Source: Octopus sinensis
Taxonomy: Eukaryota
Direction: 5' to 3'
NCBI RefSeq assembly: GCF_006345805.1
Contig: NC_043011.1
Location: 63,438,464-63,502,463 of the forward strand
DNA length: 64,000 nucleotides
The notes beneath the pieces are model-generated. The model had not been told where the DNA came from. It was given only the letters and a program-made list of their open reading frames with translations, and did not search any database. The position numbers were made by a program, and so were the translations under genes. Shown piece by piece: positions 55,371-61,168 of the stretch (position 1 is the first letter of the stretch; every line of letters begins with the position of its first letter).

Positions 55371-55394
55371 TTACTTTGGATACATAATGGGGTC
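55371..55394 (-). CDS. Copy C exon 4 coding part (DPIMYPK*)
   Basis: Acceptor cattcctttcAG; stop TAA. Confidence 0.78.
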   Translation of the reverse strand, partial: DPIMYPK

Positions 55395-58300
55395 CTGAAA
55401 GGAATGTTTGATACATTACGATTTATATTAATACCCCCTATTCCAATTTCAATTTTTATCTCCAGATTTACTCTTATCAATTGGATATAAGTTCCCTATA
55501 CAAATATTAATGTGCTAAGTTGTAACTACCTGGATTATAATGAGAAATTAATGCAGATTCTTATCTATTTCGTTATGGCGTTAAAAGTTTGCATAATACT
55601 CATTGAATCGAAGCATAATTTAGTTTCCCTTCATGTGTGTGAAATTATAAAAATATAACAATTGCAAGGAAAATCGCGGAAACATTTTTGCTTCGAATAG
55701 ATACAGAAAATATTATCGCTGAGCTCCTATTGCCACTATAACATCGATTAGCTAACTTTTTTGTCCCGATTAAGAAACAAGAATCGATTCTATACGAGAT
55801 CTAATTCACACAATAGTATAAGTGTACAGTATTTTGTTGCCACGCCCAGTTGATTTAACTATGGGACAAAGCTTGTCGCATACAAATTTGAATTTTGTAA
55901 TACCATGATACACTGGACTTGTTACTTGCTCCATCATTTCGTGGAAGATTTCTCTAGCAACAACTAACATTACAATAAGTGTAATGATATTTATTAAAAA
56001 TATGAATTTCAGTGGAATGACAGAGAAACGTTGGTGCGCTACCCTCTCCCCGATGAAAATAATATAATCATATCATTTACGATGAATTACGCAGAAACAA
56101 AGTAAATTAAAATAATTACCGTAGATAGGCATCTTGAACCAATCTTCAAGTGGAACTCAAGAGCACAGTCTCTACGCACATATCTCACACAATAATAATT
56201 AGAAAACAAAATTCTGTAAGATAAATACACAAGGGTTTTTATTTCGAAAAAAAAAAGTAATCGTTTATTAGCATCATTCCCAAGAAATGGTAGAACTGAG
56301 GCAGATTTACTTTGAATCGAAATCTCTTGGAACTGAAATGTTTCACGTGCAAGTATTTCACGCTTGGTTTAACGCGGAGAGACTTCTACACTTTGTATAT
56401 TTGTCAAAGCAATTTTACTGATTGCAAAGCTGTTGATTTTAAAAAGGGAGACAACATATGGTACGTTAGATGAAGTATTTTACAATAATAACTAAAGGCC
56501 GTGATGTAATAGTAATTAATGATAACTTTACTCATCCCCCTGTAAGGTTTGGTATTTAAACAATTTCGAATGTTCAAAGCCATTACTATATTTAGACGTC
56601 CGTTGATGAGAAGTATTTTCCAACGGATGGAACATATAGATTTACGAACGGTACAGTTAAATTGTTTCACTTATTTATCTGTCAGCATGCTAGGACAACG
56701 CCTTTTAAATGAAGGAATTGAATTCTGAACGCAAAACAGAAGCAATCGCTTGTATTCGCTAGCTGAGTAGATTGGATCAACGTGAAAATAAAAGATCTTG
56801 CTCAAGGACACCACTCTATGTCTATGGCATTTTAAGCTTTAAGATTAGGAGCCGAGTACACTAACCATTAAACTAAGGTCCTTTCAGTCTACAAGTCATT
56901 TCGTAAATAAGCATTCCCAGTAAGAATCCGATCAAAGTAAAAATACAACCTCAATATAAGGATGATTTAATTGTCTGTCAGCACATTGTGATTTGTTCTG
57001 GTACCATATCAGTATCAGCCATATGGTGAGAATAAATGACATTTAAAATAGTTCATTTAAAAACTCTTTTTTTTTAGTAGTAATAAGAAACATTTGAATT
57101 TTGCTGACATGAAAACATCTTCGAAATATTTGTGTTCAACCCTATCAAAGAATTTTGATTGATCCAAATTGGTGAGCGGTCCAGCAATGCTTGTTTCCTT
57201 ACATGCCACTTATTATTCATGGACGACCTGAAGTATTTCTCAAAAACTAAGGCAGACCTTGACAGACAAGTCCAGTCTGACTGGATTTTCTCTTATGATG
57301 TTATGATAGAGTGGATTCTCAAAACGTCTTACAATGGCGATTTGGTAAGCTATGCTTGCCAGGACAGAAGAGATATGGTTGAGAAGCGGTGAACTGATGA
57401 AGGTAATTCCACCTCACTGCAGTCTTAAATACCTGGGAATACTTGAGGCAGCTGGAATGAAACACCAAAACATTGAGGAAACGACAAAACGGTGTGCCAG
57501 CGGTGATTGATAAAAAAATATTGGCTTCACGGCTGAATGCAAGAAACGTAACTTGGGAAAGAAACTCGTGCGCCATTGCTGTAGGTAAACGTGGCGCTGG
57601 AATCCTGAAGTTAACTGAGGAGGAGTTGGGCGGGATGTCAAGAATGCTTCTAACGAGGCATGGAGACCATCATCCAGGTGCAGACATTGATTGACTATAT
57701 ATGAAGAGAGCAAACGTAGGAAGAGGACAAATAGGTGTGGAAGATAGCGTGCATTTCGAACTCGAGAGTTTAAGGAGATACCTAGCTTAATGTAAGGAGA
57801 TTCTTCTAATGACATTTAGGAATGAGGGAATATTGAGATTAAGGAAGACAGGGAAAACAAAGGAAGAATTGCAAACAAAAAGATGATAAACAAATTACAC
57901 AATAAGAGACTACAAAATTATTTACATGTAACAACAACCAAGGTTATTGGAAAAATCGAAGGAATTGGGTGATGAAAAGAAACCTGAATGCAGAGAAAGA
58001 TAGTTCTATATTTGCAAAGCAGGACCAAACGCTGATCGCGAACTGTAATGTCAACGTGAGGAATGAGCAAGTGTCTTCGCTGTGTCGCATCTGCAATAGA
58101 TGGATGACACCATTGTCCATATCACGAACAAATCATATACATCAAAGAGGACAGTCGCCAACAGCCAACACGCATTTATGTCAGGAGACAACTCCACAAT
58201 TTAAAATTTTGTGACACGCTGACCAAAATATGTCAGCAAGAGTAGCAATTCTTCCGCTTATTATGGCACGTTGGAAAGACGCCTTTCCTTGTACTCCGTT

Positions 58301-61168
58301 AAAAAAACACACTTCAACGGTACCGAAGTGCTTTCCACCTCTCACATACGTTTCTTTGGTCCAAACTGCTTTTAGGGCCATTTCCATGTTTCCAGTTATT
58401 GGGTGACTCGTTCTACCCTTTTCTGTTTTATTTTAAAATTCTGTAGATTACTGTTTTACGATTGGTTTCCTTTATGAATCCTTGATGGGTTTTAAGGAAA
58501 ACATTCTTTCTCTCCTTATTAACAAACACTTTACACATTTTTTAATTTCATTAGCTTTTTAATTTACTATTATTTCAGTTTTTCTTCGTCGCCGAGGCAA
58601 GACCGTAGCCGCTGGATCTATTGTTGTTGGTGATTCTGGTAGTGTTGCTGGTGCTTTCTTTCTATCTTCCTCCTTGCCCTGTGCAGAAACAATACTGGTG
58701 GTAAGAACGTTGTTGTCGTTGTTTAGCTGGCTGTTCCACCTTCCGTTCTCACCCACTCGCTCAGTCGTCATTGCTGTTTTATATTTAATCTTTCAAAATT
58801 ATCAGCGAAAATATTTAGCTCCCAGTAAGGGGTTTTCTTTCAACAAAAACTAGCTCTCTATGCAGGCAACCAGATTGCAGCAAAAATTAAACAATAATAA
58901 CAATAATTTGACAATTTAAGAGAATGAAATTTCAAATTATTGCAGGAGGTACAACACGTCTGACTTACCGCAAGGAACAACAACAAAAACAACAACAATA
59001 ATAATAAAAATAATACTATAATGATAATAATAAGGCGAAGAAGAAGAAGAAGAAGAAGAAGAGGGAGGAGGAGAAGAAGAAGGGGAGGAGGAGGAGGAGA
59101 AGAAAAAGAAGAAGAAGAAGAAGGAGGAGAAGAAGAAGAAGGAGAAGAAGAAGAAGAAGGAGGAGGAGGAGGAGAAGAAGAAGGAGAAGGAGAAGAAGAA
59201 GAAGAGAAGAAGAAGAAGAAAAAGAAGAAGAAGAAGGAGAAGAAGGAGAAGAAGAAGGAGAAGAAGAAGAAGAAGGAGGAGGAGGAGGAGAAGAAGAAGG
59301 AGAAGGAGAAGAAGAAGAAGAAGAAGAAGAAGAAGAAGAAGAAAAAGAAGAAGAAGAAGAAGAAGAAGAAAAAGAAGACTACGAACATGCATTCTTTAGT
59401 AAAATTTGGAGATGGATTTTGAGCTTTCGCTTTACTATTGCACCATATATCTGCGTATTTCTCACATTCGGTTTGTGCAGCAGCACCTAAAATATTTAAT
59501 TATTAATAATTAGTGATACATATACTGGGAGTATAATCATTATATTTAAAAATGAATGCTAAATAAAAGACAATAATACCGAAGAGTTAATATAGAGCTA
59601 AATTCGGATTCCCAAGCTCTCACTGGGCAATTATAATATGTATTTCATTAATGATATCAATGTTGCTCAGCTTCCGTTATAACTTCACATGTGACGATGT
59701 GGTACAATTGATTGGTGATTCTTCACTACAAAATATTTACAATGTGAAAACTTTCATAATTTTGTCTTGTTCTTTTATTTATTTCAGTCATTTGAGTGAA
59801 GCCATGCTGGAGCACCGCCTTTAGTCGAACAAATCGCGCCCAGGACTTAATCTGTGTAAGCCTAGCACTTATCCTATCGGTCTCTTTCGCAGAACCGCTG
59901 GCTTACAGGGTTGTAAACATACGAACATTGGTTTTCAAGCAATAATGGATGTGGGGAAAACAAAAACAAACACGCACACACATACACATACACACACGTA
60001 TAGACGACAAGCTTTTTTCAGTTTCAGCCTGCCTATTCTACTCACAAGGCTTACATATTATATACATATATATATATACATATATATATATATATATATA
60101 TATATATATATATATATATATATATATATATATATATATATATATATATATATATATATATATATATATATATATATATATATATATATATATATATATG
60201 TCAACCTCTATATGCATAGATGTAAACATACATAGAAACATGCTCGCAAAGATCCATACACTCACATTATATATGACAACTGATACCACATGACTGAATT
60301 AATTTCTTGCAAAATGATGCAATAATATTATTTCAATCATTTTTCAATAATACCCAAATGTTTTCTTAGTTCTTTGGATTTGTTATTGGCGCCCAACTTT
60401 CAATAAACTTTCAAACTTTTTCTAAAGATTTCAGAACTGGACTTTCAGGTCGACTCTCACGCGCCAATATGTTGACAGTTTGATGTTCCAAAAAGGGAAC
60501 ATTCAACTGATAGCCCATTTACGTTCTTCTAAACAACAAATACATCGGTTAATAGAACATGTTTTGTAAACGACACTTGAGTTTCGGCCGTTGCAATTCA
60601 GAAGATTGTTTGTTTATTTCCGCATAACTTACGAAATGTTTATTCCTTTCACTGGAGATTCTCTCGATTGAATCGGCTGCAATCGTGGATTTAATCTTAC
60701 AGTATTCTGGATTCCCCTTTCTTTTGGATTTTCTGTTTGATGTTATCCTGGATTAACTTTACATCTAATAGTCTAACTACATTATTTTTTAATCGCCTCA
60801 TTATATACGTTCATAGTTTCATCATATATGTGTTCCTTTATACTTGTTTTATAGAATTTCAAACGATTTTTTTATATATGTAAAAATAAAGTTTTATTAA
60901 CATGCATTTTTGTTTCTACGGTATGAATGTATGTGTTCGATTTGAAAATGTGTGACCAATTATGTTGATTAGATTTTAACCATATAAATATGTGTGTGTG
61001 TGTGTTTGCTGCGTGTGTGTGTGCGAAAATTGATTTTTATGTAATCATTTAATGTATGAATATAGCTTTTGTAGTTACACAGCAGATGTATATAAGTAAA
61101 AGAGGAAAACAAATGCAATATTACAACTTACTTGCAAGGAGAAGGCCAAGGAGTAATAAAATTTTCAT
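55371..61168 (-). CDS. Gene copy C: 4-exon secreted six-cysteine peptide, 84 aa (complement join 61168-61132, 59486-59387, 56213-56120, 55394-55371)
   Basis: Model gives [84 protein letters not shown]. Same exon lengths and splice signals as A, on the minus strand. Confidence 0.88.
56120..56213 (-). CDS. Copy C exon 3
   Basis: [31 protein letters not shown]; acceptor tatcttacAG, donor GTAATT. Confidence 0.85.
59387..59486 (-). CDS. Copy C exon 2
   Basis: (S)[32 protein letters not shown](I); acceptor attttAG, donor GTTCGT. Confidence 0.85.
61132..61168 (-). CDS. Copy C exon 1 (signal peptide)
   Basis: Reverse complement identical to A exon 1, followed by GTAAGT. Confidence 0.87.

Follow-up and report, generated by a model that had tools for sequence, protein, structure and literature searches.

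A cluster of three predicted genes for secreted six-cysteine peptides whose mature regions probably diverge under positive selection between homogenised flanks

The stretch of DNA analysed here (64,000 nucleotides of contig NC_043011.1, positions 63,438,464 to 63,502,463 of the forward strand, hereafter the window) carries three copies, A, B and C, of a four-exon gene predicted to encode a short secreted peptide with six cysteines; between A and C, the part of the gene that codes for the mature peptide differs far more than the DNA around it. The window is AT-rich (about 35% G+C), eukaryotic and without any N, and contains many fragments of long interspersed nuclear elements (LINEs), a short interspersed nuclear element (SINE)-like sequence and microsatellites. 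Self-comparison reveals a unit of about 10 kb that occurs three times, with C inverted relative to A and B (Table 1). Over 9-11 kb, A and C share about 98% identity: segments 1-2980 and 4916-10972 of A align with the reverse complement of 63201-54140 at 96-99% identity (self-BLAST, MAFFT). The two lie 43 kb apart, with copy B and a mixture of unique and LINE sequence between them, and unit A probably continues beyond the left edge of the window. In unit B, segments that are 0.5-4% different from A and C alternate with segments that are about 20% different, and its intron 2 is mostly unalignable. The fourth, partial unit is 94-96% identical to positions 63805-61938 of C and 1-1249 of A, and is split by a LINE (open reading frames at 49481-51178); that it adjoins the 3' end of the inverted copy C suggests a rearrangement.

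When A is aligned with the reverse complement of C, most mismatches fall within a microsatellite and three short blocks, with few in the remaining sequence. The three blocks are flanked by AG/GT and share one reading frame with an upstream 37-nt exon, which begins with ATG and codes for a hydrophobic leader; this first exon was located by scanning for an ATG followed by a hydrophobic stretch and a phase-1 donor. The resulting model applies to all three copies and comprises four exons separated by GT-AG introns in phases 1, 2 and 0, with splice-site sequences conserved in 3/3 copies. The range 55371-59486 singled out in the initial annotation corresponds exactly to exons 2-4 of copy C. Each copy has a TATAAAA box upstream of the ATG, and ATTAAA/AATAAA signals follow each stop codon, in copy A 118-208 nt past it. 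A unit of about 45 nt (GGATTAAAACACAA.AACACGCACAGAAATCAGTTGAAAATACTTT) is found twice, about 90 nt apart, in the 3' flanks of A (about 9850-9990) and C (about 55120-55260); it sits just downstream of the likely poly(A) signals and is absent from B.

Other readings of the same exons were tried and rejected. If exon 2 is spliced at a phase-0 donor (GTATTA) 4 nt further downstream, a stop follows 4-5 codons into exon 3 in 3/3 copies; read on the opposite strand, the exons have neither a signal peptide nor consistent intron phases nor conserved cysteines. The three reading frames of the accepted model are intact despite 28-52 replacements. Random substitutions simulated on the gene kept both an open frame and six cysteines in 1.1% of trials at 36 hits, and in 0 of 20,000 trials at 80 hits (<5e-5). 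The conserved splice sites, the TATA box and the three intact frames thus argue that the gene is real.

Table 1. Duplicated units, gene parts and A-C divergence of the non-coding segments (positions are those of the window).
Feature	Position	Strand	Description
Unit A	1-10972	+	promoter, 4-exon gene, 3' flank; self-BLAST and MAFFT
Unit B	30706-41220	+	older, mosaic copy; self-comparison
Unit C	54140-63201	-	inverted copy of A; self-comparison
Fourth partial unit	48897-49320 and 51076-52409	+	far 5' flank only, without exon 1
TATAAAA box, copy A	1901-1907	+	59 nt upstream of ATG
Copy A exon 1	1960-1996	+	12 codons and the opening base of codon 13; covers most of the signal peptide; phase-1 donor GTAAGT
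Copy A exon 2	5586-5685	+	100 nt; signal peptide end and mature residues to Cys3; 16 differences from C
Copy A exon 3	8901-8994	+	94 nt; Cys4-Cys6; differs from C at 16 positions
Copy A exon 4, coding part	9721-9744	+	7 codons and TAA; 4 differences from C
Copy A 3' untranslated region, first 100 nt	9745-9844	+	identical to C; 12% different from B
TATAAAA box, copy B	32599-32605	+	59 nt upstream of ATG
Copy B exon 1	32658-32694	+	identical to A and C
Copy B exon 2	33624-33723	+	100 nt; 35-38% nucleotide difference from A/C; 3 Cys kept
Copy B exon 3	38963-39059	+	97 nt, one codon extra; 3 Cys kept
Copy B exon 4, coding part	39267-39290	+	RPNKRFK and TGA
TATAAAA box, copy C	61227-61221	-	59 nt upstream of ATG
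Copy C exon 1	61168-61132	-	37-mer identical to A and B
Copy C exon 2	59486-59387	-	AG/GT block, frame-joined
Copy C exon 3	56213-56120	-	AG/GT block, frame-joined
Copy C exon 4, coding part	55394-55371	-	DPIMYPK and TAA
Intron 1			A-C divergence 0.9-1.2%
Intron 2 outside microsatellite			A-C divergence 2.1%
Last 140 nt of intron 2			A-C divergence 6.4%
Intron 3			A-C divergence 3.9%
First 500 nt past stop			A-C divergence 1.2%

The predicted precursors comprise 84 (A), 85 (B) and 84 (C) residues. Each begins with a predicted signal peptide of 16-17 residues, cleaved after about residue 16, and the mature part of about 68 residues follows directly, spread over exons 2-4; a propeptide is absent, and none of the three precursors has a dibasic processing site ahead of Cys1. 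Six cysteines are invariant in A, B and C, in the arrangement C-x7-C-x16-C-x8-C-x7(8)-C-x11-C, and the mature peptides are basic (about 8 kDa, isoelectric point 8.6-9.2, net charge +3 to +6). In copy C, the changes K40N and S42T create an N-F-T glycosylation sequon at codons 40-42, where A (KFS) and B (AFS) have none. The peptide probably adopts a compact, helical three-disulphide fold, because the members of each cysteine pair lie 8-12 residues apart, as they would on one face of a helix; the spacing would fit three helices with two cysteines each.

The initial annotation had reported, from a hand count, that the coding exons of A and C diverge mostly by amino-acid replacement while the adjacent introns are far more similar, and on recounting its figures held throughout. 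Exons 2-4 differ at 36 of 218 nt, split 16 + 16 + 4, which amounts to 28 replaced residues and only 2 purely synonymous codons (codons 16 and 24). Exon 3 accounts for 14 of the replacements with 16 differences and no synonymous change, and exon 4 for 3 with 4 differences. All six cysteines are kept, with the same choice of TGT or TGC in A and C, and the 37 nt of exon 1, said to be identical in A and C, are so in B as well. For the introns, the 'about 3' differences claimed for the ~250 bp before exon 2 are in line with the 2 found in the last 100 nt, and the 'roughly 7 percent' given for the 140 bp before exon 3 corresponds to 9/140 (6.4%). A longer stretch of intron 1, A 4916-5585, differs at 8 of 670 positions (1.2%). 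All exon differences between A and C are substitutions, and the frames stay open.

Overall, the exons of A and C are 16-17% different, against 0.9-3.9% for the introns, 2% for the 200 nt upstream and 0/100 for the beginning of the 3' untranslated region (UTR). Exons with 36/218 differences compared with non-coding DNA with 130/5384 (~2%, microsatellite excluded) give a Fisher p of 4.9e-18. A microsatellite some 400 bp long starts within about 10 nt of the exon 2 donor in 3/3 copies (5690-6085 in A, 59030-59380 in C and 33730-34200 in B); its motif is (CTT)n in A and C and (ATT)n in B.

The tail of the signal peptide is encoded by the opening 11 nt of exon 2; these are conserved in A, B and C, and variation begins directly after them. 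At the other end, the coding part of exon 4 differs between A and C at 4 of 24 positions and the next 100 nt of the same exon at none; relative to B, the coding part is 30-39% different and the 3'UTR 12%. The variable zone therefore runs from the signal/mature junction to the stop codon and does not follow the splice sites. Copy B shows a similar trend, with signal peptide, UTR and introns more conserved than its mature coding part; the exception is intron 3, whose divergence equals that of the exons. Among the three copies, up to 60% of mature residues are changed. The identity of exon 1 was considered as evidence of constraint and set aside: its surroundings show equal similarity, with only 1-2% difference among A, B and C in the 200 nt that precede the ATG.

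Codon-based analyses of the mature part point in the same direction. For A and C, the Nei-Gojobori method gives a nonsynonymous rate (dN) of 0.231 and a synonymous rate (dS) of 0.060, so that their ratio omega is 3.9 (Fisher p = 0.017), and the pairwise Goldman-Yang codon model, fitted by maximum likelihood, gives an omega of 5.2-7.6 (likelihood-ratio test p = 0.007-0.038). The initial annotation had inferred positive selection from A and C, and had named a dN/dS not above 1 with more copies as the outcome that would tell against it; when B is added, a three-sequence codon model places omega at 2.5-3.5 (p = 0.0015-0.026). In this model, with B as reference, the C lineage has accumulated about five times as much change as the A lineage, which suggests that one daughter copy (C) is diverging fast. 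The A-C dS of 0.06 agrees with the local introns (3.9% in intron 3, 6.4% at the end of intron 2), and likewise, for A and B, a dS of 0.27-0.34 matches the local intron divergence of 21-27%, while dN is 0.47-0.62.

The flanks have a history of their own. Which of A, B and C is the odd one out shifts between flank segments (chi-square 71.6, 14 degrees of freedom, p = 1e-9): B is 0.5-4% from A and C in the 5' flank, exon 1, parts of introns 1 and 2 and the 3' flank, and about 20% different in the DNA around exons 3 and 4. From this mosaic of relationships it follows that gene conversion or unequal exchange homogenises non-coding DNA in the array. Near the end of the A-C homology, 10844-10900 of A and 54267-54217 of C form a hot spot of 17% mismatch outside the gene, where A equals B; either a conversion boundary or the duplication's edge could lie here. 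Because conversion keeps much of the non-coding DNA similar, introns are a biased yardstick, and a fairer neutral value is 4-6%, not 1-2%. Since the dS of 0.06 matches the less homogenised introns (3.9%, 6.4%), the true acceleration is about 3-5 fold. The earlier claim that the exons evolve faster than the introns is therefore confirmed, but at this smaller factor and not the 8-10 fold that the raw comparison implies. Intron identity in arrays of this type overstates acceleration, which is a caution on method.

These data are best explained by a three-gene cluster in which diversifying selection acts on the mature peptide while conversion acts on the flanks, a reading to which we assign a probability of about 0.7. 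A recent, inverted segmental duplication of the whole unit would have produced A and C, B being older, and neutral divergence between the two would since have reached about 4-6%. Later conversion would have affected most of the non-coding DNA and been blocked near the diverged coding blocks. Meanwhile, residues between the cysteines would be replaced much faster than neutral sites (dN about 0.2) by diversifying selection on a disulphide-braced scaffold, and purifying selection would hold the promoter, signal peptide, splice sites, frame, cysteines and 3'UTR. The locus is a compact and internally controlled case, with introns, UTRs, signal peptide and mature peptide all in one 10-kb duplicate, where diversifying selection can be told apart from concerted evolution.

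Intron 1 of A contains a 1.9-kb insertion (2981-4915) that is absent from C and lies inside a (TA)n microsatellite; it carries a 242-bp inverted repeat (2969-3210 and 4403-4164, 99% identical) and looks like a foldback element or one with terminal inverted repeats, which would have arrived after the A/C duplication. In intron 2, both A (about 6900-7900) and C (about 57200-58200) hold a degenerate LINE fragment in sense orientation, of the family described at the end of this text; B lacks it at the corresponding position, the rest of its intron 2 being unalignable.

The support for diversifying selection, drawn from an omega above 1 and from a variable zone that tracks the protein, is real but modest, modest because the gene is short, and several observations weigh against it. 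Whole coding-sequence models with F3x4 codon frequencies give p = 0.09-0.11, as do, approximately, the 25 single-hit codons taken alone, of which 2 are synonymous (p about 0.09-0.11). Only three sequences with about 70 variable codons enter the analysis. Moreover, 5 codons have 2-3 changes and neighbouring codons change together. At codons 68-70, A and C read AAGATGTTT and TTGAAGATT and share an AAGAT that is offset by 3 nt (8967-8975 in A, 56147-56139 in C), so that four apparent substitutions may in fact be two compensating 3-nt in-frame indels; multi-nucleotide events or small indel pairs of this sort could inflate dN. Finally, no transcript, homologue, family or structure was found for the peptide.

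Could homogenisation by itself produce the contrast between exons and introns? The exon differences would then be old and roughly neutral, accumulated under relaxed constraint, and conversion tracts ending at the coding blocks would make A and C look recent. Conversion is clearly active and the A/B/C relationships are mosaic; in B, segments 1-3% from A adjoin exons that are 35-38% different, and beside exons 3 and 4 the non-coding DNA of A and C is more divergent than elsewhere, at 3.9-6.4%. Old neutral exons, however, need equal dS and dN, where 0.06 and 0.23 are observed. Omega = 1 is rejected for the mature part, as is any A-C dS above 0.15 (p < 0.05), and the points at which the variable zone starts and ends go unexplained. 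Furthermore, the long intron 2 is collinear between A and C and missing from B, as a recent duplication of the whole unit would predict. We consider concerted evolution alone an improbable account. Conversion could instead have brought the differences in, if the coding blocks of one copy, mostly C, had been overwritten after the duplication by short tracts from more distant members of the family, located outside the window. The array probably does extend past the window, the C branch is about five times the A branch, the differences cluster in adjacent codons (26-27, 68-70, 76-77 and 80-82), and intron divergence is slightly raised around exons 3-4. Such imports should nevertheless carry synonymous changes, of which there are only about 3, and the introns beside exons 3 and 4 are 3.9-6.4% different rather than the ~20% that separates them from the sole distant paralogue available. 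That paralogue, B, is not the donor, since among the 36 A-C differences it matches C at 8 and neither copy at 10. Three separate tracts would be needed, each stopping at a coding boundary, and diversifying selection would still be required to have shaped the donors, all of which makes cassette replacement quite improbable.

The same clustering of changes, several of them multi-nucleotide, could also be attributed to the mutation process, as an error-prone repair or mutator mechanism has previously been proposed for conopeptide genes. Hypermutation would here be targeted to the coding blocks, with selection only purging the broken variants, and transversions are indeed somewhat more frequent in the exons (25/36) than in non-coding DNA (67/130; p = 0.06). 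A mutator of this kind should raise synonymous and adjacent non-coding change too, yet dS is no higher than in the local introns and the 3'UTR of the same exon has 0/100 differences. No repeat or motif was seen to mark the blocks, and we regard targeted hypermutation as very improbable. Lower still, and close to negligible, we place an artefact, either two haplotypes of one locus set side by side or errors in the consensus. The 98% identity of A and C would suit haplotypes, but the copies are inverted, 43 kb apart and separated by B together with LINE and unique DNA, the 1.9-kb insertion is private to A, and the window has no N gaps. Consensus errors would not be substitutions confined to coding DNA that spare frames and cysteines, and even alleles would need balancing or diversifying selection to account for the pattern at the protein level.

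A conserved leader and cysteine frame combined with hypervariable loops is a textbook pattern, and we searched for known families that might include the peptide. A Pfam scan of the three precursors (E up to 10) returned one chance match at E = 0.31 and no family, and a word-indexed search with copy A, then with an A/B/C profile, found no homologue among 5.8 billion protein clusters. The profile matched no solved relative in the PDB at E up to 10, and an exhaustive HMMER search with an exon 3 profile against 1.84 billion representatives gave one repetitive false match only. Exon 1 was not found by an exact-match scan of JGI metagenome contigs, an Rfam scan of the whole window gave nothing, and literature searches for the peptide and SINE strings found none, the topic searches giving only analogous families. 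With no Pfam, homologue or structure match, the family therefore appears undescribed in the collections searched. As a kind rather than a homology group, it shows what is expected of secreted peptides under accelerated evolution: an omega above 1, a conserved signal peptide, UTR and introns, a cysteine scaffold, and clustered duplicates, with three complete units and a partial one in these 64 kb.

The conotoxin superfamilies of Conus are an established example of such peptides, with conserved signal sequences, UTRs and cysteine codons, a hypervariable mature region, coding parts that evolve faster than introns, and an omega above 1. The present genes resemble them as a multigene set of secreted, disulphide-rich peptides in which the signal and the cysteine scaffold, codons included, are conserved and the mature part is hypervariable. 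They differ in that no conotoxin Pfam domain or sequence match is present. Conotoxins, moreover, have a pre-pro-mature organization with the mature toxin in one terminal exon and a CC doublet in their cysteine pattern, whereas the peptide here has no propeptide, a mature part spread over exons 2-4 and no doublet, and the host is probably not a gastropod. 'Accelerated evolution' was reportedly recognized by Nakashima, Ohno and colleagues in the snake venom-gland phospholipase A2 and three-finger toxin genes. There too, the mature coding parts of recent duplicates outpace introns and UTRs, and non-synonymous changes are at least as frequent as synonymous ones; the proteins, folds and animals are unrelated, and in the present case gene conversion in the flanks demonstrably adds to the contrast. 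The pattern thus agrees with the conotoxin and snake-venom signature invoked by the initial annotation, but as an analogy only, as nothing marks these as venom genes.

Mammalian alpha- and beta-defensin clusters likewise combine a conserved signal exon with a mature exon that is positively selected after tandem duplication, and their products are cationic with six cysteines. Defensins are short beta-sheet peptides, however, and the cysteine spacing of 8-12 and the length of the present peptide point to another, probably helical, fold; there is no homology. Aplysia attractin and the Euplotes pheromones are secreted helical peptides of ~40-70 residues with six cysteines, fast-evolving and with roles in recognition, and may be structurally alike, but the cysteine spacing differs and there is no sequence match. 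The Kunitz/BPTI domain (PF00014), with its spacing C-x8-C-x15-C-x7-C-x12-C-x3-C, was considered and rejected: the first three spacings are similar, but there is no Pfam hit and the last two (x7/8, x11) differ. Among molluscs, Mytilus CRP-I, myticin and their kin are lineage-restricted secreted six-cysteine peptides, mostly cationic, with many duplicates and a positively selected mature region (PMC4558851). CRP-I shares with the present family a conserved leader, a hypervariable mature region, six cysteines and a mostly cationic character, and also a four-exon structure in which a phase-1 intron, an exon of ~100 nt and a phase-2 intron follow the signal exon (PMC4558851). CRP-I has a propeptide ending in KR/RR, a C-C-CC-C-C array and a mature peptide in the last exon, none of which is present here (PMC4558851), and the two have no sequence similarity. 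The genes would thus represent an undescribed family showing a known evolutionary pattern, and nothing in their sequences supports membership of the conotoxin, snake-toxin, defensin or CRP-I/myticin families.

The genes are presumably expressed, and their product presumably acts outside the cell on a fast-changing partner. Our best guess is that it serves as a secreted effector in an antagonistic interaction. A salivary or venom peptide is the tentative first choice, still short of even odds; an antimicrobial or mucosal defence peptide is possible but on balance unlikely, and a peptide for mating or chemical signalling, ranked next, is distinctly unlikely. We also hold as doubtful, though worth stating, the broader proposal of a lineage-restricted cephalopod family of secreted three-disulphide, probably helical, peptides, in which strong positive selection would be combined with conversion that keeps promoters, signal exons and introns uniform. 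Each of these roles would carry its own consequence. Expression in salivary or venom glands would imply a conotoxin-like hypervariable arsenal in coleoids. Coleoid venom proteins have been reported to evolve mainly under negative selection (PMC4619613). If the animal is a coleoid and the peptide belongs to its venom, an omega above 1 would contrast with that record (PMC4619613). More generally, a cephalopod peptide of venom or defence would add a fast class of small peptides to a group thought to have slow venoms, and would offer pharmacology a novel disulphide scaffold. For a peptide of mating or recognition, the consequences would concern reproductive isolation.

The remaining features of the window are mobile elements. 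Two LINE copies (41230-43002 and 26239-28055), which encode relatives of the reverse transcriptase family PF00078, share 95-96% DNA identity with a 2-kb contig of an ENA metagenome (ERZ22666216) of Italian and probably sewage origin, a hint that the animal of origin belongs to the diet in Italy; more distant relatives, at 60-65% protein identity, occur in shrimp, fish and corals. The one pointer to the taxon is a SINE-like element at about 59780-59990, followed by (CA)n, which presumably resembles an abundant Octopus SINE.

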